From Anaeramoeba ignava BMAN (Eukaryota; Protista; Anaeramoebae), in assembly GCA_028826165.1 (NCBI GenBank), contig JAPDFW010000136.1, positions 744,001 through 808,000 on the forward strand: a stretch of 64,000 nucleotides of DNA, in the 5' to 3' direction. Both the position numbers and the translations under genes were made by a program. The notes under the pieces are model-generated. The model did not search any database. It was not told the DNA's origin and worked only from the letters and a program-made list of their open reading frames with translations. Positions 1,289 through 59,277 of the stretch are shown one piece after another; position 1 is the first letter of the stretch, and each line of letters begins with the position of its first letter.

Positions 1289-4200
1289 ATGAATATGAAT
1301 ATGAATATGAATAAAATTCCAAAACAGTTTAAATTAAAGAAATACAATAAATTTTTAAGAAAACAAGCAAACACACAAATTGGTTTGATTTTTGGAGATA
1401 AAAAAAGTTCAGATTTTAAAATTTATTGTGGAAAAGATCAGGTTATGATTCCTTGTCACAAATTAATTTTAGAAGCTCGTTCAAAATATTTTATGATAAT
1501 AAAAAAAGAGAACCAAACAAATACAATCCATTTTAATAATTTTAGCTCAGAAATTGTCAAACCAATAATTAAATTTTTTTATAACGGAAAATTTAAATTT
1601 GATAAACAAAAATTTGATGAATATTTTAATTTTGCGAAGAAAATCAAATCAAGAGAAATTCAAACAAAAATTGAACTTGAAATTGAATCGATTTTGAATG
1701 TGGAAAATATTGTGGAAATTTATTTTAAAACCCAAAAAATTAATTCACAAAATCTTTATCAAATTTGTCAGCAATTCATTTCAGAAAATTTTGAATCGAT
1801 CATTTCAAATCCAAATTTCAAAACCAAATTGAATCAAAACCAAATCAATGATTTTATCGTGTTAATTGATTCAAACCACGAAATCAAAAACAACAAAAAA
1901 ATTATTCAATTAATTCAATCCAAAAAAGAAGATGATGAAAAATTCTTTCCAAAAGATTTTTTAAGCATGGTATAAATAAAAAAAAACAAAAGCAAATCCA
2001 AATAATCTTAAAATTCCTCAAAAAAACAAAAAAAAGGAAAAAATTGAACAACAAAAAGAGAAAGAATTTTTTACAAGTTTTCCAAATGGAGAGGAACTTT
2101 TTAAAATTTGGCAAGAAATTATATCAACATCTTACATTGAAGTAAAAAAAAACAAACAAAAAGAAAAACAAAAAGATATTTAAATTAAATCTTTTTGTTT
2201 TAGATTGATGAAAAAATTGTAGAATTTTGCTTATTATTCCAAGATTCATTCCAAAAATGGAACCCATTTCAAACAAAAGCAAATCCAAATGAAAATGGAG
2301 CACAATCTGAAAAATATTTTGATTTGCAAGAAATTGATGAAGGAATTAGTAAAAAAGAGGCACACTCAATAAAATTTATTCTTTTCATGATTAGTTTATT
2401 CACTTATTCAAAAGATCTCATCAAACGTAATTTAGGATTTAATATAGAATTTAATTTAATTTAATTTAATTTAATTTTGATCTGAAAAAAAAAAATCCCA
2501 AAAAATAGAAATGATACAAAAAGAAAATCAAAACCAAAATAAAAAAGAAAATATTCAAGGACACAAATACTTGATTTCTTTATCAATAATTGCCATTCTT
2601 TCCAAATCAAAATTTAATAGACAAAATTTATGTCAGAATAGAATTTTTCAAATTATCCAAGATTTATTGGAAATTACGAAACATCTTTTTAAGTTAATGG
2701 AAAATTTTAGAGTAAAAGAAAAACACAAATTCCTTTTTAATTCCTCTTTTTTTTAATTCCTCTTTCAAAAAAAAAGAAAAAGAAAAAGAAATCAAATCTT
2801 TCGCTTTCAATTTATTATTTAATGGAAATTCAATTTATTCTTTTAGGAATTATGGAAATTTTAAATCAGTATTTCAGAGAAAGACAACTTTTGCCAAATC
2901 AAGAAATCATTGAATCATTTAAACAAACAAGCATAATTCCGTTATTGATTGGTAAATTTAAAGTCAATTTCTATTTAAAATGAATTATTTATCCAGTTTT
3001 CATTATTTACAATAAATAGACTGCTTTGAATTCAATTTAAAACTCAGGAAAGTCTATTTTTTCACAACAAAGCAAATGGGAATCGTATTGAAATTACTGG
3101 AAATGTTTGAAAACTTTTATAGATTAAATTTATTAAAAGAAAAAGAAAAAATTGATTTAGTTTTGCTTTTGTTACCCTTTTTCCAACCTCCAAATTTATC
3201 CTCAACTCTCCCAAATATTGGATTTGAAATCAAAGAGGGAAATGAAAATGAAAAGGAGAATCGAATTGAAATTGAAGATGTTTTCGAGACTAATTATTTT
3301 ATGTTTGATCCAAAAATCAAAAAACGAGAAAATCCTTTCATTTTACAAAATTTCAGAACTCTCAAACCAAATTTAGTTCTTCTTGAATTTGATTTTCGTT
3401 CCAATATTTTCCAATTTCTCACTCAAGTGATTGAAGAAGAAAATATAAGTGATCAAATTATAAACAATAACAGGATTTCTTATATTGGGGATTTTATTCT
3501 TTGGATTTCTTATTATCTCAAACCAAAGTTATCAAAAAAATGGACAGATTTGAAGAAGGAAATTGAAGAAAAGAAGCTTCATGAGAAAGAAACTGGAGAA
3601 ATGCAAACACAAACAGAGAAAGAAGTCCAAATCACGAACCCAAAAAAAGTTTCGGAAATTAGATTATACAATAATTATTTTGATACAGTTTTCAATCATA
3701 TAAGAGACTTCCAATTCATTGAAAAATCAAGCCAAAATACATCATTACAAGAAAATCTCCAAAAAGAATTGGATAAATATAGCAATGAAACCCAAAACAA
3801 AGTCCATAATTTCAAAGAGAGATTAATTGTAATCTTTCTTGATTTATTCAAAAATCCAGAAAACAAAGAAACAGAAACAGAAACAGAAACAAACCCTTAT
3901 TTAATTCATATTTTGTCAAACGAAAAAATTATTAAAATCCAAAAATTTATCAAAAAATTTTATCCTCAACTTCAAATGTATATTTTAATAGAGTTGAAAA
4001 AAATGATAATTACTGGAAATGATCAAGAAACACTGAAATTTTTCCAAGAAAATGGAGGATGGGAAATCTTTTTTTCCGATTACTTTATCAGAAGAAATTT
4101 AATCAATTTAGATGTAAAAACAAAAAAAAACAACAACAAATCTTTTTTTTTTTTTTTGTCTCATTTCTTATTTTTCTTCAAATTATTTTTATTATCAATT

Positions 4201-7200
4201 AGATTGAAGAAAGGGAAAAGATTCACTTGGATGAAATGAATACAGATTTGCAAACATTATTGATTGATTTCATGTTTAATGTTCTTTTGAAATACCAGAA
4301 TCATTTTGATTATGGATTCTTATTTGACCAAATTTCCAAAAACACAAATATCAGATCCAATTTGTTTTTATTGAATCGATTTTTAGAAATGATAATTGAA
4401 CTTATCAAAACAAACCCTCAAGTATCATCCAACAAAATCATTGAAATTGCAGGATTCAGAGAAATTCAAGAAATTTTATCGCATTCAATCAAAGAAAGAC
4501 ATAATCAAACAATTGCATTATGCCTAGATATTTTGGATCTATCATTCCAAAACGCAGATATTGAAGTTATTTTCGGAAATGAAGACACTATCAACGTTTT
4601 GATGAAATTATTTGAAAACAAACTGAACCAAAAAATTCCTTTCGTTTATGTTCCAAAAATCCTGGAGAATGCTAAAAATGGGGAAAATGAAAATCAGCTC
4701 ATTTTCTACTTAATTCAGAAAATTCTTTTCCTGTGCCAAAAAATAAGTTCAAATCAAAACAACCAAGAGAAAAATAATGCAATTGAACTTCATGTTGTGG
4801 AAGAATTTTTTGCAAAATGCTCAGAATCCATTTCACGCAATCGAGAGGTTATTCAAAACATATTTTTGAATCCGAATCTGTTTTTCATTTTCCAATCTTT
4901 GCTGAATGACAAAGAACAAAACACAACCTATCTCATTTTATCCCTTTTGCAAGAAATTATCAGAAACAATCAAACGCTGATCGATGAACTCTATCAGATA
5001 ATTCCAATACCAGAATTTATCACAATTCTTTATGAAACAGAAAAAGGAAAGCCAACAAAAAAGTTATTCCAAATTCTTTTAGATTTGATGATTGATAATG
5101 GGACATTTTCAATAGAAAACAATTTCATTATCAGAAACGAAAATATGATCAATGTGATTTTGGAACTTTATTCATATAATTTGAAACAAACCCAAAACGA
5201 AAATCAAGAGATTTCTTTTAGCGAAGTTTTGGGAATATTTAACACACTTTGTGAGAAATCACTCCATAATATTTATTGTTGTTGTCGGCAAAGAATCACT
5301 CCTTTATTACTTGAATTGATTCCCCAAATCCAAAACTTAAATTTATTCAACCAAAATATCCAGTTTATCGGAACACTTGGAGCACATCAAATTCTAGTTT
5401 CTGAAATGAAACAGTACTTTTGTGTGCTAAAAGATCAGCTACGAAACACCAAAAGAAACAAATTCTCCATGGCAATGCTCGTTGGATTACGAAAAATAAT
5501 CAACCAAAATTCAGAACAAAACGAAACAACACCAAAAAATTTCTTTGATTTTTATGAAGAAAACTCAAATATCACACTTCCAACTTTCAAAAACAATTTC
5601 ATTTCCAAAAAATTCAGTTTTATCACTTGGATACGATTTGAAGATTTTCACATCAAAAATCCACATTCATTGCAAGAAAATGAAGAGAAAGATTATCGAA
5701 CTAAAATATTTAGTTTTTTGACAGAAGATTCACAAGGTATCCAGTTATTTGCGGAATTTAGTAACAAAAACGAAAAACTTGAATCACTTATCTACCAAAT
5801 TTCCTCAAATCAAGAAAAAGAAATTATTGAAAAAAGGTTTCATTTCCAAATTGAATTTAAGAAATGGTTTTTGTTTGTTTTCACACAAAAATACAAAAAA
5901 TCCAATTCACAATGCGAAATTTCAATTTCTCTCGATGAAAATCAAACAATCACAAAGAAAATCATGCTACCAAGAAAAATAGGAAATCAAAAATCCTTTA
6001 TTCGAAATGAAATTGGTTCAAACTTCTCATTTTCTGATAATCAAAAAAGCCCAAATCCAAAATCTTTTTTTGGGCAAATGGGAACAATTTATCTTTTCCA
6101 GGAATTCCTTAATCACAAAAAAGCTAAAGCAATTCATTTTCTTGGACCAAACTACAATTCCTTTTTCTATGAAAGCGAATTTTTCAAGTATTCCAATCCA
6201 GCAATCGAGAAAGAATTGAAAGAAATTTTCAATGGGAAGTTAACCCAAAAAATCACCAATTATTATAACCCAAAAGAGATGAAAGAAAATTTGTTTTTAA
6301 ATCACTCTCCAATGACCATAATCAAAGAAAATTCACAATCACACAAAATCTATTCCTTTTCAAAAACCAATTTCCAAGATATTGCTTCTTGTTTAGGAGG
6401 AGTTGAAATCTTTTTTTATCTAATTTTTGAAATTGATGAATTGTTTGAAGAAGAAAATTTCGAAATGAATAATGTAATTGCAAATCCAACTGAAACGGAA
6501 ACGCAAGCAAAAGTATTTTTTGAAGAGTTATTAAAAATAATGCAAGATATTTTACTAAATGATTCAAATTTGCAAAAAGAGATGATCCAAAAGGATGGAT
6601 TTTCAATATTAAACAATATCCTCAAGTCAATCAATTCAAAATATTTTTCAAAACAATTATATCATCTCATCAAGAATTTGCAAGAAAAAATCCAAAATGA
6701 TGAATTCCAAATACAACTTAAAAACCAATTAATTTTTGATTTCCACATTTGGAAAAATTTCAGTTTTGAAATCCAGAAAAAAATCATTTCTAAAAATGAA
6801 AATGAAAATCAAAATATCACAATTTTTGATTTGTTGGTTATACTATATTACTATGATGAATCTTTAAATAAAATTCAGCAATCAAATTCTCCTCCGCAAA
6901 ATGAGGATGATCCGAAAAAGAAAATTGAGGAATCATCTCAAAACTTGTTTTCTATGATTGAAATTCTTCTTGACAAAATTGAAAATTATGAATCCACAAC
7001 AAAATATCTCCAATCTTTGATTTCGACATGCTTTCTTTTCCAAACAAAAGACTTTGTTGAAAAAATGCTTAAGTTTCTTTTCGAATTCCTAAGCAAAATG
7101 AAGAAGCAGAATAAGACTCAATTATTCACAGTTAAATTATACGAACCACTAATCCAATTAATGAAGGAAAACAAAATGAACACAAAATTAATTTGTTTTG

Positions 7201-10200
7201 GACTTGAAATTATCCATTTGATTGATGCTTCTCTGAATATAAATGAGGAAAAGAATCAAATATTGGCAAACACAAGAGAATTTGAAATGAGTAAATTGGA
7301 GCATTTTTATCCTTTGATTCACAAGATACTGGCCAATAGCATAAATAAGATTCCAAAGCAAGTTGTTGATATCCTTTTCAAAATGATTTATGGAAATGGA
7401 AATGATCGATCGAAACCCTCTATTATCCAAAACCCTTTTATTTTAGCAACAATCACTGAAATTGTTGATTGCTTTCCAGATTTAGTAGATATCATCCATT
7501 TCCACAAATTATTCTATTTAATAGCAGAAAATGATTCGAATAAGGAAAAAATGCTCTCAAAATTTGGATGGCAAAAATGGTTTGCATCTTTATTAAACTT
7601 CACCCAAGCAGACCAAGAAGAAAAAAACGAAGACGAAAATCGAAAGAGACAAAATCAACATGACGTTAATGAAATTATCTTCAGCACCCTTAATCTATTA
7701 TTTATTTATTCTTTCTATAACACTTCATACAACTTCCCCAAAATGTTTGAGCAATTTCTTTCATCCGTTTATTTAGTTCATTTTTCAGCAGCAAACAAAC
7801 AAACCATTCCCAACATAATCGAGAGAATAATAAGTGATATTATTGAGGATCTGAATATAAACTTAAAAGTGGAAATCGATATCAACAACCAATCCTCATT
7901 CACATCAACAATACTTCTCACATCAAATTCAAGCATCTCAAAAGAACATTTTTCCAAAAATTTGTTTTATCTAATCAACGTGTTGAATGGGATGGTCTTC
8001 AATCTATCCAAAAATCAGTTTGAATTTACAAAAACAGAAAAAAAACAGCAAATACAGATCATTCAAACAAAGGTTTCAAAACATTTTACAGCACCTCTCA
8101 AAAGCAAAAAATCTATTCAAAATATGAACTTACCACCACAGGAACAAAACTTAAAGAACATTTTCGAAGTGAAATTTGATTCAGTTAAGAAAGGCAAAAT
8201 TTTGAAAAATTTGCTTTTGATTTTGGACAAAATTGAGTTTTTCAAAGAGAAGACAATCCAATTCAAAAGTAAAGACGAACAAAGAATAATCTTCAAAATT
8301 ATCATTTTCTTGATTATCGCATCCATTCCACAATCAGATATCAAATTGAGTAATTTTCTCCTTTCAAAGCTAAATCAGATGATTAGCGAACAATTAAATT
8401 TCAAATCTTCATCCATCCAGAATGCACAAGAGCTAATCTCGATCTGCTTTTCCTTTTTCTTTTCTTGCATTCAAAATGAAGACCACATTTCAGATGAAAA
8501 CGAAAACCATCACAAAGCCAAAAGAAATCTTCTATTAACATATCTGCAAATGATTATGCAAGAAAATTACAATTTCCTATTTGGGTTGTTTTCAATCCAA
8601 AACAAAAAGCAAAAACTGCTTTCTCGAAAACCCAAAAATTCGTTTGTTTTTTCAAGTAAAAATATCCAAGAATTCGAAAAAGAATTGATGAAAGATCAAT
8701 GGAAAAGCGCAGCAAATCGTGTTTTCTTCCCAATAAATGAAAAGATTTCGCGAGATATCCAAGAAAACGAAAAAGAGTTTATCAAAATTCAATCGAGCAA
8801 CACCTTTCATATGGAAGAATTATTCAATAAAGAATTTCAGGTGAAACAGAAGGAGATTGAATTAATTTCAAAGAAAATTGAAGGTGAAAAGCAAAGTCTC
8901 ATTTTGCAAGAAAAACAAAGAAAATTGGAAACAGAAATGAACCAAAAAAATCATTTGAGCTATATACAAAAATTTCAAAACAATGATTGATAATTCGATT
9001 ATCGGGAAATATCCTTGGAGTGTAAACGAAATTAGTGTTTTGGATAAGGAATTCAGCAAACAGCAATATTATGCCAAACTTTCTGGAATTGAGGACGAAA
9101 TGAGAAGACAAAAAAAATTAAAGTTTTATTCAAAAAATCAAAATCAACATCAAAATCAAAATCAAAATGAAAAAAGAAGGAATTTGATAAAAGTAAATCA
9201 ACGATTTCACTCAAAAATAATTGAAATTTCAGATCAATTAACACAAAGTGAAAGTGAAAATGAAAATTTAAATTTAAATGAAAAGGAAAAGGAAAAGGAA
9301 AAGGACAAAAAAAGGGAAAGATTCAAGCGATTAGTCATTTTATTTTCAAAACAATGCGAGATGATTTCGAAAACCAAAATAACAAAAGGAAAATTACAAA
9401 TTACAGAAAACTCCATTAATTTCTTTGTGAATTTTGATTTAAAGAAAGAAGAAAAAGTAAAAGATTATTTGTGGAAAATTGAAACAATCAAGTTAATCCA
9501 TAAAAGAAGATATCTTTTCAAACATTCGGCGTTGGAAATATTTTTTGAAAACAACAGAAAATACGTCTTTTTGAATTTCCAGACAATGGAAGATCGAAAC
9601 GAAATTTATGAAAGAATTCAAAAACATAGATTAGCCAATATCGATCTATCCAGTTTTAACTATTTTGGAAATGATCCGACTAAATGGATTGAAAAAACCC
9701 AGATGACAAAAAAATGGCAAGAAAGAAAAATATCAAATTTCGAATATATCATGTATCTAAACACAATATCAGGAAGAACATATCACGATATTTCGCAATA
9801 CCCCATTTTCCCATGGATAATTTCAGATTACGAATCGGAAAAAATAGATCTTAACAATATAGATGTATTTAGGGATTTATCAAAGCCAATAGGGATGCAG
9901 TATAACAAGATCATGTATTACTATGAGAATTATGAAATAAATGGAAAGCAAGTAGAATTTGAGTTCAATTACCAAAAGTATTATTCGAATCCAGAAATTG
10001 TTACATCGTATTTGGCAAGATTGGAGCCATTTACTTCAATCTGTTTAAAAGAAAAGTATCCAATATTCAAATCAATTCCTGAAACATGGCAACAAATCAA
10101 AGAGCAGAATAGCCTCGATTTTAATGGCGAGCTTATCCCAGAATTTTTCCATTTACCAGATTTCTTAAGAAAACCCAATATATTTCAACAAAATGAAAAT

Positions 10201-11568
10201 GAAAATGAAAAATTGATTTTAAACAAAATTGAAGATGTCGAGCTTCCAAAATGGGCGAAAACACCAGAAGAATTCATTCGAATACAAAAAGAAGCGCTTG
10301 AAGCAGAATATGTTTCAGAGAATCTTGATTACTGGATTGATTTGATATTTGGGTATAAGCAAAAAGGAAAAGAATCTAAGAATGTGCTGAACGTCTTCCA
10401 TCCAAGTTTGTATGAGGAAAATATTGATTTTTCAAAACTAGAACAAATGCAAAAAGAAATCCAAAGAAAAGGACAGATTCCAATCCAATTATTCACACAA
10501 AAGCATCCAAAAAGATTAAAAACAAAGGAACTTCAACAAAAAATTGTTTCATTTTTTGGATGGAAAAATATTTTGTCATCATCAAAATTTATCCATTTGA
10601 CTAAATTAGGGATGCATTCAAATCCAGTTATTTTTACTATTTTCCAAGAAAGTGGAGATGCGCTAATGATTCTCGGAAGCTCTGATAAAATTGTTACAAT
10701 TGATAAAGAAGGAATTATCCAAAAGCACACATTTTCCTTATTTGATTCAAACTCCAAAAACCAAGGCTTTAATTGCGCATTGGAAAAAAAATTGAAAGAG
10801 AAAATTGAGCTTTCCTTCTCAAAGAATTTCAATAATTTCCAAGAATCTATAGGAATTGACACAAATTCTAACTGTATTATTTGTTGTGGGTTTAGTGATA
10901 ATACTTTCAAATTTTTTCAATTTGACGGCTCTAAAATGGTTCAAAGTATTTCAAAACACAAAGATACTGTGAATTGCATATCAAATGATTCCAAATATAT
11001 TGTTACAGGATCAAGAGATACAACAGTAATTGTTTGGGAATTTGATTTAAAAGAAGGGAAAGTAAAAGAAATTCCAAAACATGTTTTTGAACATGAAAAA
11101 GAAGTTAAAAGTGTCGCAATATCCACTGAGTATGATATTGTTTTAAGTGGATCTATTGATGGGAAGTTAATATTCCATTCTTTAAACAAAGGAAAGCATA
11201 TCCAATCCATAATTCTATCAGATCAAAAACCAATTTCAATTATTCAAATCACCAAAGAAGGAAACATTATCACATTTTCAGAAAATTCCAATATTTTAAG
11301 ATTGTTTACAATTAATGGATATTTATTAAAAGAAGCTAAATGTTTACAAAATGTTTATTCCATTTCGATTACTCAAGATTCAAATTTTATTTTTTTAGGA
11401 GGAGAAAATGGAATTTTTGAAATTCGAAATTTATTTGATTTAAATCTTATTCAAAAAGTTGGTTTAGAAGCAAAAATTTATTCAATTTCAATAATTGAAA
11501 AATCATTTTTAATTATTTTTGGATTAGGAAATGGAGAAACTAAAATTGGTGAATTTATTTTGAAATGA
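1289..11568 (+). CDS. Multi-exon BEACH-domain protein (neurobeachin/LRBA/BchB-like): N-terminal BTB, ARM-like, ConA/LamG-like, PH, BEACH, WD40; one probable frameshift error near 8985
   Basis: ORF 8983-11568 has PH (IHKRRYLFKHSALEIF), BEACH (KWQERKISNFEYIMYLNTISGRTYHDISQYPIFPWIISDY, ELIPEFF, VELPKWA, WIDLIFGYKQKG) and WD40 (VTGSRDTTVIVW). ORF 4227-8990 has ConA-like FSFITWIRFE and FFGQMGTIYLF. GT-AG introns at ~1970-2036, ~2142-2204, ~2428-2508, ~2712-2847, ~2952-3019 and ~4114-4203 link these to the BTB ORF 1289-1975 (SDFKIYC..CHKLILEARSKYF). Confidence 0.85.
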
Positions 11569-11609: not shown

Positions 11610-13399
11610 TTAATTTTGATTATTAAATTTGTTAATTAATAAATCAAATAAATTTGGATTTGTTTGATTTAATTGAAAATAATCAATTCCAATTTCAATT
11701 TCATCAATAATTTCTTTTGTAATTTTAATTCCTTCTTTAATTTGATTTGAATAAATCCAATATTCAAATATTTGAAATGATTTATTACTTAATTCACTAT
11801 AATCTGTAACTTTATTAGAAGTATCTTCAGTTACAGATAAAAACATTCCTCGATATAATTCACTTCTCATTATTAATATTAATTTAGGAAATTTATATTG
11901 TTTTTCTTTTCTTTCAATTATAAAATCTTTTTCATTTTCATTTAAATAAATTCTTTTCATTGTTTCTTCAATTTTTTCATTGTAATTTATAATTTCTTTA
12001 ATTTCAGAATATAATTTTGGATTTATTTTGGAATTGTTTGAATAAATCATTTCAAATATTTGATTTGATTCTTTAATTGATTTTTTTGAAATAATTTCTT
12101 GAAGTTTTTCATTTTGATTTTGATTTTTTTGATTTAATCTATATTTCAATATTAATTTATGAGCTTCAATTATTTCTCCATTTTCGGTTTTAAATGAAAT
12201 ATTACAAAATTCTTTTCTTCTAAATAAGTTTTATCAAATCTTCTTCAAGATTGGAAAAAGGAGGAGGAGAATAATAAAGAAATGATCTATTATCTCCACA
12301 AGAAATATGATAATTGGAAATTTCTTCATTAAATCTTAATTTAGGAAGTTCAATTTGAATTGGAATTGATTGATAATTTGTATCTTCAGTTCCTAATTGA
12401 CCATATAAATTATTTCCAAATCCAATAACTTTCCCTTTGGATGTTAAAATCAAATTATGTTCATCTCCAACAGAAAAATCAATAAAATTATCATTTTCTT
12501 CAAATAAAGATGATTTGATTTCAGTAAATTCATAAGTATTTTTATTTTTGCCAAGTCCATTATATAGATAATTTCCACATGAATAAAGTTTTCTTTTTCC
12601 ATTTTCATTTTCATTTTCAATCAACATTATTGAATGAAAATATCCACATTGAATATCAATTATTTTGCCTTTTGGAATATTTTGTATTTGGGTTAATTTT
12701 TGGATTTTTATTTCTTTTCTTGATTCTCCTAATCCAATTTGACCATATACATTGTATCCGCATCCAAATAATTCTTGATTTGAATTTAAAAGAAAAACAC
12801 AACTTGAATAATTTCCTGAAAGTATTTTAGAAACATTTTTCATCATTAAAATTGGTTTTTTTGTTTTTTCAAGTGTTTCAGAATCAAAACCAAGTTGGTC
12901 ATATTGATTTAAACCAATTCCATAAGCATTTTGATTTGAAGTTAATAAATAAATTGATTGATATCCAGAAACAATATCTTGAATTATTCTATCATTTGTA
13001 TCTTCAATTAATGATGAAATATTGATAAATTCTTTTGGATTTTTCTGGATTAATATCATTTCCTTTAGCAAATACATTTCCTTCTTTTGTTAAAATAGCT
13101 TCATTTCCCCATCCAACAGTTACTTTTTGAATATTTTCTTCAATTTGGATTTTTTCAGGATTTTGATATGAATCGTTTTCATTTAAATATTCTATTGCTT
13201 TTCCATTTTCAAAAAGGAAAATTGTTGCAAAGCCTCCTGTTACAATTTGTTTAATTTGTTTTTCATTTTTATTTTCATTTTCATTTTCATTTTCATTTTC
13301 ATTTTCAAATTTAAATTGAATTGGTTTTGTTATTTCATCTGGTTTATTTTTTATAAGAATTGGATATTGATTCCAACCAAAAAATATAATTTCATTCAT
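11610..13399 (-). CDS. RCC1-repeat + tandem BTB protein, copy A (two frameshifts: sequencing error or pseudogene)
   Basis: ORFs 13004-13399, 12220-13077 and 11610-12149 join into a paralogue of intact 21575-23341 (GxNxxGQLG RCC1 motifs; EAHKLILKYR; FPKLILIMRSELYRGMF). Confidence 0.85.
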
Positions 13400-21574: not shown

Positions 21575-23341
21575 TTAATTTTGATTATTAAATTTATTAA
21601 TTAATAAATCAAATAAATTTGGATTTGTTTGATTTAATTGAAAATAATCAATTCCAATTTGAATTTCATCAATAATTTCTTGTGTAATTTTAATTCCTTT
21701 TTTAATTTGATTTGAATAAATCCAATATTCAAATATTTGAAATGATTTATTACTTAATTCACTATAATCTGTAACTTTATTAGATTTATCTTCAGTTACA
21801 GATAAAAACATTCCTCGATATAATTCACTTCTCATTATTAATATTAATTTTGGAAATTTATATTGTTTTTCTTTTCTTTCAATTATAAAATCTTTTTCAT
21901 TTTCATTTAAATAAATTCTTTTCATTGTTTCTTCAATTTTTTCATTTGAATTTATAATTTCTTTAATTTCTGAATATAATTTTGGATTTATTATTCTGTT
22001 TGAATAAATCATTTCAAATATTTGATTTGATTCTTGAATTGATTTTTTTGAAATAATTTCTTTAAGTTTTTCAATTTGATTTTGATTTTGATTTAATCTG
22101 TATTTCAATATTAATTTATGAGCTTCAATTATTTCTCCATTTTCGGTTTTAAATGAAATATTACAAAATTCTTTTCTTCTAAATAATTTTATCAAATCTT
22201 CTTCAAGATTGGAAAAAGGAAGAGGAGAATAATAAAGAAATGATTTGTAATATCCACAAGAAATATGATAATTGGAAATATCTTCATTAAATCTTAATTT
22301 AGGAAGTTTAATTTGAATTGGAATTGATTGATAATTTGTATCACCAGTTCCTACTTGACCATATTCATTATGTCCGAATCCTATCAGTTTCCCTTTAGAA
22401 GTTAAAATCAAAGTATGGAAATCTCCAACAGAAAGATCAAGAATATCATCATCATTTTCAAATAAAGATGATTTGATTTCAGTAAATTCATAAGTACCTT
22501 CATCAATTCCATTATATTGCCAATCTCCACATGAATAAAGTTTTCTTTTTGGATTTTGATTTTGATTTTGATTTTCATTTTCAATCAACATTATTGAATA
22601 AGAAGCTCCACATTGAATATCAATTATTTTACATTTTGGAATATTTTGGATTTTGGTTAATTTTTGGATTTCTGTTTCATCTTTTATTGATTCTCCTAAT
22701 CCAAGTTGACCATATAAATTGTATCCGCATCCAAACAATTCTTGATTTGAATTTAAAAGAAAAACATAATTTGAATAATTTCCTGAAAGTATTTTAGAAA
22801 CATTTTTCATCATTAAAATTGGTTTTTCTGTTTTTTGAAATGCTTTAGAATCAAATCCAAGTTGGCCAAATTCATTTGAACCAATTCCATAAACATTTTG
22901 ATTTGAAGTTAATAAGTAAATTGAATTAAATCCAGCAACAATATCTTGAATTATTCTATCATTTTTATCTTCAATTAATGATGAAATATTGATAAATTTA
23001 TTTGGATTATTTGGATTAATATTGCTTCCTTTGGCAAATACATTTCCTTCTTTTGTTAAAATAGCTTCATTTTGATAACCAACAGTTACTTTTTGAATAT
23101 TTTCTTCAATTTGGATTTTTTCAGGATTTTGTTTTGAATCATTTTCATTTAAATATTCTATTGCTTTTCCATTTTTAAAAAGGAAAATTGTTGCAAAGCC
23201 TCCTGTTGAAATTTGTTTAATTTGTTTTTCATTTTCATTTTCATTTTCATTTTCGAATTTAATTGGTTTTGTTATTTTATCTGCTTTATTTTTGAAAAGA
23301 ATTGGATATTGATTTGAACCAAAAAATAAAATTTCATTCAT
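21575..23341 (-). CDS. RCC1-repeat beta-propeller + two C-terminal BTB domains, copy C (intact, 588 aa)
   Basis: RCC1 motifs GIGSNEFGQLG, GCGYNLYGQLG, SVGDFHTLILT, GFGHNEYGQVG; BTB-like FCNISF..EAHKLILKYR and KDFII..FPKLILIMRSELYRGMF..FEYWIYS. Confidence 0.9.
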   Translation of the reverse strand: MNEILFFGSNQYPILFKNKADKITKPIKFENENENENEKQIKQISTGGFATIFLFKNGKAIEYLNENDSKQNPEKIQIEENIQKVTVGYQNEAILTKEGNVFAKGSNINPNNPNKFINISSLIEDKNDRIIQDIVAGFNSIYLLTSNQNVYGIGSNEFGQLGFDSKAFQKTEKPILMMKNVSKILSGNYSNYVFLLNSNQELFGCGYNLYGQLGLGESIKDETEIQKLTKIQNIPKCKIIDIQCGASYSIMLIENENQNQNQNPKRKLYSCGDWQYNGIDEGTYEFTEIKSSLFENDDDILDLSVGDFHTLILTSKGKLIGFGHNEYGQVGTGDTNYQSIPIQIKLPKLRFNEDISNYHISCGYYKSFLYYSPLPFSNLEEDLIKLFRRKEFCNISFKTENGEIIEAHKLILKYRLNQNQNQIEKLKEIISKKSIQESNQIFEMIYSNRIINPKLYSEIKEIINSNEKIEETMKRIYLNENEKDFIIERKEKQYKFPKLILIMRSELYRGMFLSVTEDKSNKVTDYSELSNKSFQIFEYWIYSNQIKKGIKITQEIIDEIQIGIDYFQLNQTNPNLFDLLINKFNNQN

Positions 23342-23761: not shown

Positions 23762-26700
23762 TTAATAATCATATAAAAGACTCAGAGCTCTTGCAGCATC
23801 TGTTTTAACTAAAGGACTTTTATCCTTCAATAATAAGATAATTTGACTGCAAATATGACCTTTGTTGATTGTATTACGCATATCTTTTGGGGTATGTTTG
23901 AGGAAATATGCAATTACTAAAGCAGAATTTGCACGAATTTGGGGTTCATCTGAAGTGAAAAATTGGATTCCAGTGATCAAATAATTGCTGATTCTTGGGG
24001 AATAAATGCGGGCAAGTAGTTTGCACAGAGAATCCAGAAAATTTTCATAATCAATACCTCTTTTGGGATTAATGACATTTGATTGGAAAAGGGAGTTGAT
24101 TTCGTTATTGAAGATCAAAAGTCCGTAATTTCGGAAAGTAAGTTTGACAGACTCTCTGACTTGGTTATTGGAATCGCGGAGATAGATCATCAAAGAGGGG
24201 AAGTTATTGTGGAATTGTTCTACAAGAGATATTCGTTGTTCGAAGTTGTTTTCGATACCAAATTTGGCGAGAGATGCGAAAAGATTGATGGATGCTGCGC
24301 GGATTTTTGGGTGTGGAGACATGAATGTTTGTCTCGTTCGCGAACAGTTGTGTGTGACGAATCCGTTTGCAATGAAAGTGTGGTGAATGCTTTCTGTCTG
24401 AAGATCCATAAGCGCCTGCTTGGGTGTTTCAACAACAGATTCAAGAGGAATGAGCATGAATGGATGATGAACTTGAACTAATTTTTGGAAATTGGAAAAT
24501 TTCATAATTTCGTTTTCTTTTGAGTTTCTTTTTTTCTTCTCTTCAAACTTTCTCTGAAGAAGATATTCTGTTTTTAACATAATTTCTTCTGTTTTTTCTT
24601 CTCTTTGCAAACGGAACCCAATTATGCGGAATAAATTCAAAATGTTTCTTAAATTCTGTGCAAAATTCAAAACGATAATGTTTTCTGATTCCAAAATTTT
24701 CGAAATTTCCAATTCGCAATCAATTCCGAATTCATGATATAAATTGAGTGCTTGAGTAAAGAGTTTTTTTGCAAAAACAAATTCTTGTGGATCATTGAAG
24801 GATTGTTTGATTGGAGAAAGAATGAAATCGCGATCGTTGTTTTGGATAAGAAGAGAGAATTCAGGGAATCTGCTTTGGAAACCAGCAAGCCATTCACGTT
24901 TTGATTGGGAAGAACAAGCGGGAAGCCAGTGAAATATTTGATGTGAAGGAAGACATAAAACAAAAAGAAGTGATAGAAATGCGTTGAAATTCTGGGAATG
25001 GAGAAATTGTGTCAGATCATTTTGGTCTTTTTGAATTAAATCAAGAGATAAGAAATCTTGCAAGAAATTTGGCTCATTTTGCAAGATGAGAGAAATGAAA
25101 TCATCTCTGAAACAATCAAAAGAAGAAGAAGAACGAGTGAGGAAAGGAAGTATTCGGGAAATGGTTGGAATTCGTTGATCTGAAGAAGAAAGTGGGATGA
25201 GTTGCTTTGATTCAAGAATATCAAGATTTTCTGAGATTTGAGATTGTGTGATTGTATTTTCAAGAGAAGATTTGAATTGAGAAACGGAAAGAATATCGAA
25301 AGAGGATGAGTTTTTGACAAGAATATCTGGGATGTTTTTGAGAGTGTGAGCAATAACAACACTATCATCAGAAGTGAGGAATTTTGCTGGAGAAAATTCA
25401 GATGAAGAAAATGAAACCAAAAACGGATGGTCTTCAGAAACAGTTATTTTTCTGCCTGAGATTGTTGTAACGACAAAGAGACGTCTTTCAATTTGGGTTT
25501 TCTCGAGTTGAAAGAAGTTGTTTATGTTGGTTTTCTTTATGACAAGTGATTCAGGATCAACAGTTGAAATTTGGAGATTTTGGGAAGAGAAGGTTTCTGA
25601 GAGATTACTGATTGAGGTTGAGGTGATCCCATCAGCGAGAAGAACGTTTGTGTCTTCAGCAACACAGAGCGTAATTAGATGCGGGGAAATGACGGAGATT
25701 GGGAGAACTTCGGAAATACGTTTGAGATTCTTCATTGCCTCAAATTCAACATCAACATGTTTTCCTTCAGTTGAAGGGAGAATCATTCCAAAAATTGAAC
25801 CGATGTATTTGGAAGAAACCTCAGAATCAACAGACACGATATTGCCCAGTCCACGGATTGCGCATTTAACGACTTTTGGACAAGGATCATTTTGGCGCGA
25901 AAACAAACAGTTCAAAACCATTGATAAAATCTTTGGCAGAGATGAAACATGGTTTACAAGTTCAGCAAAGACAGATGTTGCAGCGATTCTTTGACCTTCA
26001 ATGTTCTTTGTGAGATATGGATAAACAAACTCACAAAGTTTGACAATATGCTGCGGATTTTCAAGAACATATTGTCTCACAATAAGTTGAAGACCCTCCT
26101 CGAAATTTTCTCCTGAGGATAATGCTGTCCATGCATCTAATTGAAGATTCTTCTCGAAAAATCCTGGATCGTCGAATTGTTCTTCGTTTTTGTAAAGTTT
26201 CTCAAGAAGATCCTTTGGAGACGGTTGTTCGGGAATTTGCATAAATGTGTTTGGAATAATCTCCTTATCAACGTTTTGCTTTGTTTCTTTTGGCGGTTCT
26301 TCTTTTTCATCATCTTGGATCTGAATATTTTCGTTTGATTTTTCGTCTTCATTTTTTGGAGAAGAATCTTGTGTGTTTTCTTTATCAGGAATTGTTTTCT
26401 CATCAATCTCATCAGGTAATTTTTTGAGAACTTCACGTTTGAAGAGGAAACTTTGAGCAACAACACTAAGCAAAGAAACAGCATCTTTCATGTTCAACGA
26501 GTTGAAAAATTGTTTGAGAGTTTCTGTTGTTTGAGCAAGAAGAGTGGATTCGTTTGACAATCTGTTGGAATATGTTCCCACAACAGATCCAAAACGCATC
26601 AGAATTGCGCCGAGAATGTGAGCAGGTCTTTGCGCAAGAATATCATCAAAACACCCGCTTTCAAGAATACCTCCTAACGCAGCAGTTGCGGTTTGTGGAG

Positions 26701-29700
26701 GAATTGTTGGTTCATAAACAAGTTTTTGAGAATTTGTATCCATTCGTTCAGTAACAAGTGTTTGGTTGTTCATTGTATCGAGGAGAATTTTGAGCAATTC
26801 GGGCGCAAGTTCAGAATCTGATGCGATGGAAACAAAGCATTTCTCGTCAAGTGGGGAAAGTGGAGGAGGAACTGAGAAAAGAGTGCCAATCACAGAGGTG
26901 ATATTGAATCTTGCGAGTGTTTGAGCAGCATGAAGTGTTGCATTGAGTGTTTGAGGATTAGATATTTGGGCTAGCGAACCACGCAGTGATGAAAAAACAT
27001 TTGAAACTTGGTCTGTTAGTTCCTCTTTTCCACGGATGGTGATACATTCGTTATAGATCAGTGCAGCAGCGTTTGATCCGCTGTCACCGATATCTGCAAA
27101 TCCGTCCACAAGTGCGACAAGAAATTGCGTGATTTGATAACGTTTGAATAAACTTGTAATCGCAACCGCAATCTCTCGAGCGGTTTCAAGCATGGTTTGT
27201 GTTTGTACAGTGTCGATTCTCTCTCTCGAAAGCGCGAGTCTGAGAAGAGGTTTTGGTGGTTTGACAACACGGAAAGGAGTCTTGTTTTTGGATGCAAGAC
27301 GCAGTAAATAGTCAATATAAAGCATCATTTCAACAGTGTGGAAAGCGTGAGAACGAATCGGTATTTCCGGATCAAAACATCTTGGAATCATTACTGCAAG
27401 AACTTCTCCAACTCGATGGAAGTCCTTTTCTGAGAAAACAAGATCTTTCTCGATATCTCTGTGCTTTTTTCTGCGTTGGTTTGTTCTGAAATCAATAAAA
27501 TTCATTGCCAATTCCTCGACTGTTTCGCATGCTCTTGATCTTTGTAACGGATTTGATGATCTTAATTTTGGAGCAATGTAATGGAAAATTCTATGGAAAC
27601 AAGCCCCACTTGTGTCCATATAAAGAATGGAAGAAAGAACATCTGTGAAGCCTTGCATGATCAAGTCTGTTCCGCCATGAGAATATGATCTTGCGGAATC
27701 TTGCTTATCTTCCTTCTTGTGTCTGTGTTTGTGCCGTGATTTCTTCTCCTTCGTGGATTGCAGCGCTCCAGCAACACCCACATCCCATAGCTTCAAAAGC
27801 GCTTCAACAACCTTTTTCTCCTGTTCTGGAGGAAGAAGCGGCTTGAGCAACACCAGCGCCACAATTGCTCTCAACGAGAGAACAACAAGATTATTATAGT
27901 CGTTTTTAATAGCGGCTTCTTTGACAACTGTTTTTATATACGAGTCTCCATGCTCGCTTTCCTCTTGATGCTTCTCGGAATCCGAGACTCGCATTGAATG
28001 ATTAGGATCAATTCTTGTTGGTGATATGAAGCCAAGCAAAATATCGAGGAATTCTTCTCTTCGCTCGAAATGGTAATTGGGATCCTGATTGGTTGATCTT
28101 AACGCAGTTGCCATGTTGTCAAAACTGACAGCTATGGATTCCATTGTTGTGACAGGCGAGTTTGCTGAAGAGGAAAAATTTGACACCAACGGCATAAGTT
28201 GTTTCAAAACAGAAATTTCTAATCTCGACACCATTGTCTTTGATGGTGCGTTTGCAACTGCATATCCGAAACCTAGAATCACACTTTCTCGCATCCCAAG
28301 CATTTCTGGTCCTGATTTGTCCTTTTTCTGGAAAAATCCCGACCGTTTCACAACCATGTCAACTTCGATAATGTTCGCTAGAGCATCCAGAACCCTGTCG
28401 AAATGTGATCCTGCAACAAGTCCATATCCAACCGCAAAGCCTTCTCTTTCGAGTGCCTCCATTTTCCGCAGTTCTTGAAACATTCCTCTTAATTTCCGGA
28501 TCACCAGATCATTGTTCCGTGATTTCTGCAAGCAAATGCACAGGAAAATGTGCAATGTGCGTCTCGCTTCGCTATTTTTGCTGATCTCCAACTGTCTTCC
28601 AAACGCTTCTGCAAGAACACTGTTCCATTCATCATCATTCACAGTTGTCACTGTACTTCTGACGAATTTGACAAGCATACCGCGCCACTTGTCAATGCCA
28701 AAATTCTTGGCGTGATGTTTTTCGAGATAGTTCTGCAATCTCTGGATGTGTTTTTTCTCGAAGGCTTCATTGAGCGAAGGATGGAGAACGGGGGAAAGAA
28801 CTCTGAGCAAAGACAAGGCATTGGCACCTGGATCGTTTCTATCGTATGGAAGAATTGACATTGAGAGCAGACGGGCGTAAATATGCTGTGGCTTTGGCAG
28901 GTTAACGAGTTGGTCGAAATCAAGGAAAAATTCATCCGAATAATCGGTTTGATTTGGATCCTCAGCAGCAGCTCTCTTTTTCATAGCGACAACACCTGTT
29001 GATTTGCAGAGCATAGGCTGTGCCATAAGATACTCCTCTCTGTCGAGTAATTCTAGGGAATAAGGGCCATAAAATATTCTCAGCAGCACCAATACTTTGT
29101 GCCATCATCAACAATATCCGATCCGCATGGCTGCGTAGAGAGCGTGGCGACATCTCCAGAGAATACACCTTGTTCTTTGTCTTCTCCTTCTCCTTCTTCT
29201 GCTGTTTTTCCAGACGCTTTTTGTTCTTCTTATCGAAAGCATCGATCTCTTCATCGCCAATTGACGCGCACTTGAGAACAAACATCACAAGATCTTTTCC
29301 TCCAGCAACATACAAATACATCTGGTTCGCCATCGAAACAATCAGATCGCAAACCGCTGCAGACAGCGCATAATTCGTTCCTGTTGTCTGTATTAGATTT
29401 TTCACAGAAGCAACTATTGTTTCCTTCATGTCTTTCAGTTCGTTCGATGAATGTGTCACTAAATGCGTTATCAACTTCACAGCTCCTTCTTTGGTTTGTG
29501 TATCTTTCGCCTCCATTTTCGGGAGCAAGAAGCGAAATAGGTAGTGAATAAACGTTTCCGATATTATTGCAAAGCATCTCAAAAGTTCATTATGTATTTT
29601 GTAAGAATTTTGGTCTGTCGGATCAACAGGCACGCAGATCAACGGAAATATCGTTGTGAATACACTAGTTAGGGATTGTTCCGACAAACGGATGTCTCCG

Positions 29701-31381
29701 TTCTTCATGGCCTCAAACACGTTGTTTAAGCATCGAACAAGAGGTAAGTGGTCTCTGTTTTTTTCCTTCTGAAAAAGTTTCAATAATGCCGAAAGAAATC
29801 TTGATATTTCACCACGTAGCTTGTCTGCCTTCAAGATTATTAACAACGGTCCCATTGATTGTGCTGCTGCTAATCTTATCATCTTGTCTGATGACTTCAG
29901 CATCCATGAATCGAATAACCATGTGTAAAGTGTTGAAACTTCGGTTTGGAATGAATCGTATGTTATACTTTTGATATCAACTGAATCTTTATTTGCAACA
30001 TAATGAATAATTGCTTCAAAGAAGTTTCCCATTGCTTTTTAAATATAAATATAAATATAAATATAAATATAAATATAAATATAAATATAAATATAAAAAT
30101 AAATATTTAAATAAATATAAAATATAAAATAAATTTAAAATAAATATAAATATTTAAATAAATTTAAATAAATATAAAAATAAATATTTAAATAAAATAA
30201 ATATAAATATAAATATAAAAATAAAATTTAAAATAAATATAAATATAAATATAAATATAAATATTTAAATAAAAATAAATATAAATTTAAATAAATATAT
30301 AAAAATAAATATTTGAAAATAAAAATAAATATAAATTTAAATAAATATATAAAAATAAATATTTGAATATAAATATTTAAATAAATATAAATATAAATAT
30401 TTAAATAAATATAAATATAAATATTTAAATAAATATAAATATAAATATTTAAATATAAATATAAATATAAATATTTAAATAAATATAAATATAAATATTT
30501 AAATAAATATAAATATAAATATTTAAATAAAGATAAATATAAATATAAATATTTAAATAAATATAAATATAAATATAAATAAATATATTAAAATATCAAA
30601 TCTACTTTTTGCAAATGCTGCTTGCATTTTCTTGGATTTAATTGAACTTAAAATTGGTAATACTCTTGTGAAAATTTCTCCTAATCTAGGAACTGTAACA
30701 AGTGGATTTGATGATGTAAATTCTCCAAAACATGTTATAATATGATAATGTGGAATTGTTCCAATTTGAAATTTAAGTAATAATTGATCAATAACTTCTT
30801 TATGAAATCTTTTTCCTAAAGCAACTAATGTATTTGAACTTGCAATTTGGTTATCTTGATTATTATCCTATTTTTATAATATTTTTATAATATTTTAATT
30901 TTAAAATAAATTTTAAAATAAATTTGAATTTTAATTTACATTTGAGGATGTCATTTCATCAATTGAAAATTGAATAATATTTAATGCTAAATCGGAAGGA
31001 ATTCTTTCTATTTTTTGTTCTACTATTGTTGACATTAATTGAATAAAATGAATTCTAATTTCTTTGTTTAACTTTTTTTTTTTTAAAATATAAAAAAAAA
31101 TTTAATTCAAAAAAAAAAAAAAAGCAAAAAATAAAATAATTTTAATTATAAACCTTTTCTTTGCTAATATGATTTAAAATTGAAGAAACAACAAGTGGAG
31201 TTTTATGATTTCCAATTTCAATTAATGCATCAGAAACAGTACTTCTCACAGTTTTATTTGTATCAGAAACTGAAATAATTAATTGTTTAACCATCTCATC
31301 AATCATTCCTCCAGTTTGGATTACAATATTTGAACGAATTAAAGCTTGAGCTCTTGAAGTTTTTTTACCAAAAATTTTCAT
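23762..31381 (-). CDS. MROH1: Maestro heat-like repeat protein (MROH1/HEATR7A/SGR6-like) precursor containing an intein; 4 exons; +1 frameshift near 29067 (probable error)
   Basis: MROH motifs [93 protein letters not shown]. Exons at about 31381-31153, 31071-30940, 30868-30606 and 30034-23762. Confidence 0.88.
24347..25666 (-). mobile_element. Cis-splicing intein (440 aa; Cys1...His-Asn | Cys+1) with degenerate LAGLIDADG homing-endonuclease region
   Basis: Block [14 protein letters not shown]; block [19 protein letters not shown]; remnant block [22 protein letters not shown] and [12 protein letters not shown]; blocks [24 protein letters not shown] followed by C. Excision restores the HEAT helix ISPHLITL|CSRTRQTF...[12 protein letters not shown]. 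Confidence 0.95.
30040..30590. repeat. Intronic (TAAATA)n satellite expanding MROH intron 3 (~30035-30605)
   Basis: TAAATA/TAAATATT repeats between the GTAGAT donor and AAAG acceptor on the minus strand. Confidence 0.9.
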
Positions 31382-57360: not shown

Positions 57361-57476
57361 CAAATTTAAAATCAAAATTCCAAATTTAAAAATTGAAGTT
57401 TCGAATTTTAAAAGAAAAAAAATTTTTTTTGAATTTTTTCATTTTTTTCTTTTTCAAAAAAATTAAAAAATTCAAA

Positions 57477-59277
57477 ATGAATTCTAACTCAAATCAAAAG
57501 AAAATGAATGATTGTTTATTTACTGGAAGAAATCAATTTCCAATTCTTATCAAAAATGAACCAGATAAAATAACAAAACCAATTCAATTTAAATTTGAAA
57601 ATGAAAATGAAAATGAAAATGAAAAACAAATTAAACAAATTTCATCAGGAAATTTTGGAACAATTTTCCTTTTTGAAAATGGAAAAGCAATAGAATATAT
57701 AAGTGAAAATGATTCAAATCAAAATCCTGAAAAAATCCAAATTGAAGAAAATATTCAAAAAGTAACTGTTGGTTATTTTAATGAAGCTATTTTAACAAAA
57801 GAAGGAAATGTATTTGCAAGAGGGTTAATCAATTCTTCAAATATAGAACATTTTACGAATATTTCATCATTAATTGAAGATACAAATGATAGAATAATTC
57901 AAGATGTTGTTACTGCACATGGATCAATTTACTTATTAACTTCAAATCAAAATGCTTATGGAATTGGTTATAATTATTATGGTCAACTTGGTTTAGATTC
58001 TGAAACACTTGAAAAAGCAGAAAAACCAATTTTAATGATGAAAAATGTTTCTAAAATATTTTCAGGAATTTCTTCAAATCATGTTTTTCTTTTAAATTCA
58101 AATCAAGAATTATTTGCATGTGGTGATAATAAATTTGCTCAACTTGGATTAGGAGAATCAAGAAAAGATGAAACAAAAATCCAAAAATTAACCAAAATCC
58201 AAAATATTCCAAAAGGCAAAATAATTGATATTCAATCTGGATATTATCATTCAGTCATGTTGATTGAAAATGATGACAGAAAAAGACAACTTTATTCATG
58301 TGGAGAATTTCACACAAATGGACTTGGCAAAACTGAAAATACTTATGAATTTACTGAAATCAAATCAGATTTATTTGAAGATGATTATATTCTTGAAATT
58401 TCTGTTGGAAATAATCATACTTTGGTTTTAACTTTTAATTCAAAATTGATAGGATTTGGATGGAATCCTTATGGTGGCTTGGGAAATGGTGGTACATATC
58501 AATCAACTCCAATGCAAATTGAACTTCCTAAATTAAGATTTAATGAAGATATTTTCAAATATCATATTTCTTGTGGAGAATTCAGATCATTTCTTTATTA
58601 TTCTCCTTTTCTTTCAACTCCTTTTTCCAATCTTGAAGAAGATTTGATAAAACTTTTTGGAAGAAAAGAATTTTGTGATATTTCATTTAAAACCAAAAAT
58701 GGAGAAATAATTGAAGCTCATAAATTAATATTGAAATATAGATTAAAAGATGAAAATGAAATTGAAAAAGTTAAAGAAATTATTTCAAAAAAATCAATTA
58801 AAAATCAAATCAAATATTTGAAATGATTTATTCAAACAAATCCAAAATAAATCCAATATTATATTCCGAAATTAAAGAAATTATAAATTTAAATGAAAAA
58901 ATTGAAGAAACAATGAAAAGAATTTATTTAAATGAAAATGAAAATGAAAAAGATTTTATAATTGAAAGAAAAGAAAAACAATATAAATTTCCAAAATTAA
59001 TATTAATAATGAGAAGTGAATTATATCGAGGAATGTTTTTATCTGTAACAAAGAAGATACTTCTAATAAAGTTACAGATTATAGTGAATTAAGTAATAAA
59101 TCATTTCAAATATTTGAATATTGGATTTATTCAAATCAAATTAAAGATGAAATTCAAAATTACACAAGAAATAATTAATGAAATTAAAATTGAATTGATT
59201 ATTTTCAATTAAATCAAACAAATCCAAATTTATTTGATTTATTAATTAACAAATTTAATAATCAAAATCAAAATTAA
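57477..59277 (+). CDS. RCC1-BTB protein, copy E (frameshifts in 3' part)
   Basis: ORFs 57393-58826 and 58823-59092 plus a tail ending NKFNNQNQN*; indels in A-runs. Confidence 0.85.

Follow-up and report, generated by a model that had tools for sequence, protein, structure and literature searches.

A class 1 intein with a decayed endonuclease in MROH1-like HEAT-repeat genes of Anaeramoeba ignava and its probable origin among RNA polymerase inteins

The stretch of Anaeramoeba ignava BMAN DNA analysed here (the window) comprises 64,000 nucleotides of contig JAPDFW010000136.1, from position 744,001 to 808,000 of the forward strand, and carries on its minus strand a gene for a large HEAT-repeat protein of the MROH1/SGR6 family, the last exon of which is interrupted in frame by an intein. 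The gene is composed of four exons that begin at 31381, and its start lies about 2.3 kb further upstream than that of the long ORF, a point that the first-pass annotation missed together with the one-base frameshift described below; the introns between the 5' exons are AT-rich, with a GC content of 3-5% where measured. The encoded protein is the same as KAJ5066965.1 (UniRef100_A0A9Q0L914) of A. ignava, in which the intein occupies residues 1650-2089 and is 100% identical. The features of the gene are, in window coordinates:

23762-24346, minus strand: C-extein, 194 aa plus stop, with Cys+1 at 24344-24346; contains the last HEAT repeats of the MROH2B_C-type domain
24347-25666, minus strand: sequence encoding the class 1 intein (440 aa), whose LAGLIDADG homing endonuclease has decayed
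24347-24511, minus strand: C-terminal splicing region, intein residues 386-440, with block F Asp421 (24404-24406) and His429
24512-25336, minus strand: degenerate LAGLIDADG domain, about residues 111-385, placed by alignment and fold match
25337-25666, minus strand: N-terminal splicing region, residues 1-110, with Cys1 at 25664-25666 and block B at 25427-25438
25667-30034, minus strand: N-extein, last exon up to the intein, with HEAT_Maestro_2 and HEAT_Maestro domains
29053-29095, minus strand: region of a one-base frameshift, the shift lying near 29053-29070
30605-31381, minus strand: three 5' exons (31381-31154, 31071-30940 and 30867-about 30605), from KAJ5066965.1 mapped to the window

The host protein matches the HEAT_Maestro_2 (E 2.5e-82) and HEAT_Maestro (E 2.9e-24) profiles, and in this protein of at least 1,600 aa the Maestro HEAT domains PF23221 (below cut-off), PF23210 and PF21047 stand in the MROH order. 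PF23227 is present in the precomputed annotation of the host and in the nearest ESM clusters, and the C-extein is closest to SGR6/MROH1 clusters with PF23227 in the ESM Atlas, a lead with a recognition score below the reliable range. The sequence flanking the intein is HEAT/MROH on both sides, which lends some support to the first-pass proposal that excision would give back a normal MROH HEAT repeat. The Maestro domain matches bear out the first-pass annotation, which had taken the host for a non-enzymatic, eukaryote-specific MROH1-like HEAT scaffold. Dictyostelium Mroh1 and Arabidopsis SGR6 share the domain order and the type of C-terminal domain, but no intein is reported for either (PMC5450189), and the two MROH paralogs of A. 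ignava differ from them in being longer and in containing acidic low-complexity inserts. A protein search with the C-extein returned only its own protein, and neither this search nor the PDB yielded an intein-free MROH1 orthologue; two metagenome scans were likewise without a match.

Two overlapping ORFs in different frames meet at the frameshift, which the NCBI model of KAJ5066965.1 passes as a 43-nt intron. This 43-nt stretch has a GC content of about 40% and encodes a Trp-Pro motif that is kept in the second MROH paralog on contig C24, and therefore the shift at 29053-29070 is probably an assembly indel and the short intron is likely to be a gene-finder patch. The alternative, that the window gene is a young pseudogene with a real frameshift at about 29055 whose intein rides along as a passenger without ever being translated in frame, draws on the same pair of ORFs and on the need of the NCBI model to skip 43 nt. 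It is very unlikely, as more than 5 kb of the gene downstream of the shift is free of stops, the catalytic residues of the intein are intact, and the shift lies at short homopolymers, with similar shifts occurring in the paralog and in other genes of the assembly. Elsewhere in the window a neurobeachin/BEACH-domain gene (3076-11568, plus strand) is split into three overlapping ORFs, another sign of assembly indels.

The intein consists of 440 codons without a stop (24347-25666, minus strand) and forms part of the open frame 29092-23762; the chance of such a stop-free run expected from base composition is about 2e-12. Its boundaries read HLITL/C...THN/CSR, with a Cys at position 1 and at position +1. 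Block B is formed by Ser77-Glu-Asp-His80, in which the usual Thr of the T-x-x-H motif is replaced by Ser and the His is invariant; the intein of the C24 paralog retains the Thr. Block F contains Asp421 and not the Cys of class 3 inteins, and block G consists of His439-Asn440 at 24347-24352 on the minus strand. C1, H80, D421, N434, H439 and N440 are invariant among 51 aligned sequences. The 1,320-nt in-frame insertion with class 1 motifs described in the first-pass annotation is thus present with Cys1, His80, Asp421, His439-Asn440 and Cys+1 all in place, and the profile searches proposed there agree with it: Pfam Intein_splicing matches the window intein above cut-off (E 6e-11), as do both the N- and C-terminal NCBIfam intein models (TIGR01445 and TIGR01443). 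At the level of sequence, the segment is confirmed as a genuine class 1 intein.

The same annotation had named removal of the segment as an mRNA intron, or lack of a predicted Hint fold, as outcomes that would speak against an intein. There are no GT-AG ends at any register that would give precise removal of the 1,320 nt, which rejects an ordinary intron, and the composition of the segment is exon-like, with 35% GC versus 3-5% in the measured introns of the host gene. A Hint fold is predicted: the AlphaFold2 model has a pLDDT of 91.4 and a pTM of 0.90 when built from a 51-row alignment with 50 relatives, an alignment that was needed since a single sequence gave a pLDDT of 37. The best Foldseek matches of the model are the endonuclease-containing inteins TliVMA, PI-PfuI and PI-SceI (E 5e-10), followed by mini-inteins at about 2.5 Å rmsd, and every match is an intein or a Hint domain. 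A cleavage-only domain of the Hedgehog or bacterial intein-like type is unlikely in view of the full His-Asn/Cys+1 set and the internal endonuclease domain.

The endonuclease itself is degenerate. In the first LAGLIDADG motif Asp-Gly has become Ser179-Ser180 (Ser179 at 25130-25132), and in the second Gly-Gly-Asp-Gly has become Ser-Arg-Phe-Pro (Phe267 at 24866-24868). A Pfam search gave no match to the endonuclease domain of the window intein, and LAGLIDADG_3 was matched in 18 of the 51 aligned inteins. Both catalytic aspartates are missing, which rules out an active homing element; they are gone in the C24 intein alike, and outside relatives keep the two residues in 82% and 76% of cases.

A search of the genome recovered two MROH genes, the second of which lies on contig C24 and carries an intein of its own:

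C24:620366-621694, plus strand: intein of the C24 MROH paralog, 443 aa, at the same codon as the window intein

The C24 intein likewise follows Pro-His-Leu-x-Thr-Leu and is followed by Cys. The paralog contains two frameshifts in AT-rich low-complexity stretches, which are probably assembly errors, and protein database searches returned no entry for it. The exteins of the two genes are 41% and 43% identical and the splicing regions of the two inteins 40% and 44%, in contrast to the endonuclease domain with 30% in the pairwise and 21% in the multiple alignment. These identities indicate that selection has held the splicing regions while the endonuclease decayed; judging from them, purifying selection on the splicing regions is about as tight as on the host, and homing is not maintained in this way. 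This is the pattern predicted for a scaffold whose function depends on splicing of its precursor. The presence of a related intein at the same codon in both paralogs points to an insertion before or near the duplication, and in the trees the MROH inteins form one clade with modest support (87.7/92 and 94/57). The junction sits in a HEAT helix and is only moderately conserved between the paralogs, with about a quarter of extein windows equal or better.

With the intein as the query region of a protein search, 36 of 36 full-length matches other than the protein itself carry RNA_pol_Rpb2 domains, the named ones being archaeal RpoB proteins (Helarchaeota, Odinarchaeia and Nanoarchaeota) and a pelagophyte polymerase. 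Within the A. ignava genome, its next kin are inserted at the (H)WG-x-x/CP site of RPB2, of RPA2 and of two copies of RPC2. The polymerase inteins at this site (archaeal RpoB, Chrysophaeum and A. ignava RPA2, RPB2 and RPC2) are homologous to the MROH intein over its full length, with 20-33% identity, and have the same C-terminal block, but host and insertion motif are non-homologous. Most of the prokaryotic and virus-like polymerase inteins keep both LAGLIDADG aspartates as well as a helix-turn-helix insert, which is missing from the MROH inteins. The window intein is thus a family member at a non-allelic position and not at a homologous polymerase site. The searches and the trees together give good support to an origin of the family in RNA polymerase genes. 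The two RPC2 genes with an intein both lie on contig C89 (222463, plus strand, and 292087, minus strand), are inverted, about 68 kb apart and nearly identical, and in each the open frame is interrupted a short way 5' of the intein. A more distant relative is found in RPB1 (C67:262296-263633, minus strand), where it is split by an assembly frameshift.

In the trees the MROH pair and the RPC2 intein form a clade with an SH-aLRT/UFBoot support of 99.9/95 under LG+F+G4 (60 rows) and a UFBoot/SH-aLRT support of 100/98 under LG+C20 (36 rows). Mis-delimited inteins and near-duplicates (P0003, P0036, P0046, P0118, P0123's second, P0127, P0137, P0141 and P0171) were left out of the trees, as were the second RPC2 copy and the frameshifted RPB1 intein. 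The window intein still joins RPC2 at 95/97 when the C24 row is removed, and the more diverged C24 intein alone joins it weakly (44/47). A topology that unites the three polymerase inteins to the exclusion of MROH is marginally rejected by an AU test (p 0.031). On this evidence the RPC2 intein is likely the specific sister of the MROH inteins.

All three branches of this clade are long and compositionally odd, and the intein might instead have come, as an element that splices, straight from a giant virus, from an archaeal donor or from RPB2 or RPA2, with the grouping of MROH and RPC2 arising by long-branch attraction among decayed, AT-biased inteins. In line with such a donor, a sister relationship of MROH and RPB2 is not rejected by the AU test (p 0.16), and the top pairwise score after the C24 intein belongs to the RpoB intein P0042 from a prokaryote-like gene cluster (108 bits versus 106 for RPC2). 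Members of the family also occur in non-polymerase hosts, and viral inteins are interleaved with such a cluster in the main text of the survey of A. ignava inteins (PMC10710043). However, the A. ignava inteins of RPA2 and RPB2 are equally long and AT-rich and yet stay outside the clade, the support of which survives both a change to the C20 mixture model and the omission of one MROH sequence, and a direct donor of this kind is considered improbable. The other hosts of the family in public data are of several kinds (P0074:54-587, P0162:1035-1536 and P0069:272-802): the flanks RLGGT/CLNR of one resemble a pyridine nucleotide-disulphide oxidoreductase active site, the flanks TVLSQ/CNTH of another resemble a HerA/FtsK-type ATPase, and a further host is the RNA polymerase largest subunit. 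The family to which the window intein is assigned by sequence seems to be prone to host changes.

The intein tree is unrooted and carries no direction of transfer, so that a movement from polymerase to MROH is inferred from distribution. The polymerase site is occupied in archaea, in virus-like contigs and in eukaryotes, and the RPC2 intein, which lacks the endonuclease, is common to A. ignava and A. flamelloides; MROH, in contrast, is absent from the eight intein sites that the main text of the survey gives as shared by the two species (PMC10710043). RPC2 and viral inteins are placed together in cluster 17 of the survey. The insertion sites of MROH and RPC2 share Leu at -1 and Cys at +1 and little else. 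No microhomology with the RPC2 site was found in the window gene, whose DNA is no closer to it than background (9 of 30 bases); the C24 site is weakly similar (13 of 30, in the top 3% of flank positions).

The MROH1 intein itself is already known. The first-pass annotation had implied its novelty, a suggestion that falls with the NCBI name of KAJ5066965.1, 'intein-containing maestro heat-like repeat family member 1 precursor'. The survey reports 103 inteins in 79 proteins of A. ignava BMAN, with 18 novel hosts, and describes inteins that spread non-allelically, endonucleases that have decayed and the demonstrated splicing of three other inteins (Gallot-Lavallee et al. 2023; PMC10710043). MROH, maestro and HEAT are not mentioned in its main text, and a literature search for inteins of maestro or HEAT hosts turned up no pertinent paper. 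New to the literature may be the occupied site in a second paralog and the probable movement of an RNA polymerase intein into MROH. As a catalogue entry the MROH intein matters little, the protein being already labelled as intein-containing.

Most inteins occupy catalytic or NTP-binding motifs, and the usual explanation of this is that homing needs conserved targets and that imprecise loss is costly. It is unusual for a nuclear intein to have a non-enzymatic host (Green et al. 2018; PMC5784728). The new hosts named in the main text of the survey (dyneins, kinesin and helicases) are NTPases, unlike MROH, and the non-allelic jumps reported there link similar motifs such as P-loops, whereas the MROH and RPC2 sites share little (PMC10710043). 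Inteins have been published in phage minor capsid, portal and tape-measure proteins (bioRxiv 10.1101/2025.01.02.630785), which likewise have no nucleotide-related enzyme activity, but these reside in often-exchanged viral genes while the MROH host is a nuclear, intron-containing, eukaryote-only scaffold. As the HEAT-helix junction is only moderately conserved and the kin are RNA polymerase inteins, the MROH intein is one of the better cases for asking how inteins gain new sites when no motif is shared, which the main text of the survey left open.

The reading that is probably correct is that a class 1 cis-splicing intein with a dead endonuclease, derived from the RNA polymerase family, became fixed in MROH1-like genes and was then duplicated. 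It is proposed that an intein of the family found in RNA polymerase second subunits, most likely of the lineage that A. ignava RPC2 carries today, entered an ancestral MROH gene by a non-allelic move at a time when the endonuclease still worked; the direction and timing of this move are inferred. The MROH gene would then have duplicated, or the intein would have homed early between the paralogs, and both endonucleases decayed. Translation of the gene would yield a precursor some 2,300 aa long. By the established chemistry of class 1 inteins, His80 and Asp421 would assist an N-S acyl shift at Cys1, Cys+1 would take over the N-extein by transthioesterification, and Asn440 would cyclise with the help of His439, which frees the intein and joins the exteins. 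The ligated product would be a HEAT solenoid of about 1,850 aa, and it is sound to expect from the sequence that the mature protein would require splicing.

The solenoid probably works on lysosomes together with WASH, as its orthologue Dictyostelium Mroh1 acts with WASH in late lysosome exocytosis (PMC5450189). An insertion near the 3' end of Dictyostelium mroh1 has the same phenotype as the knockout (PMC5450189) and, by analogy, the last HEAT repeats probably matter for function. Strumpellin, a component of the WASH complex, was found in the A. ignava genome. It is present at two loci, C65:58730-62770 and C74:372783-377121, one of which has in-frame stops or unresolved introns.

The persistence of the intein in both paralogs across about 60% sequence divergence, although the endonuclease is dead, could suggest domestication as a redox or metal switch, or as a cleavage-only element, that times the arrival of full-length MROH1 at the lysosome or symbiosome membrane. 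Redox traps between Cys1 and Cys+1 are known for other inteins and one is conceivable here. The difficulty of precise loss explains the persistence equally well, however, every residue for ordinary splicing is present and nothing points to conditional behaviour, so that a switch of this kind ranks as the least probable of the alternatives. A broader proposal, which is tentative, holds that a resident RPC2 intein jumped within the nuclear genome into a non-homologous, non-enzymatic scaffold gene, at a site with hardly any sequence resemblance to its home site, and was kept in both paralogs, where it may act after translation as a switch on the remodelling of lysosomes or symbiosomes. If true, and if absent from the supplement of the survey, this would clearly exemplify an intein that moved ectopically between sites with no motif in common. 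The two paralogous inteins, with 40% identity and native Leu/Cys junctions, form a natural pair for splicing assays.

The host MROH gene has a GC content of 36-43% (window 24000-30000) compared with 17-32% in most other genes of the window; the C24 paralog has about 28%, and each intein tracks its host (35% and 26%). RCC1-repeat genes form an expanded family in the window, with at least three members (12220-13077, 21575-23341 and 57393-58826), of which one has a BTB domain.
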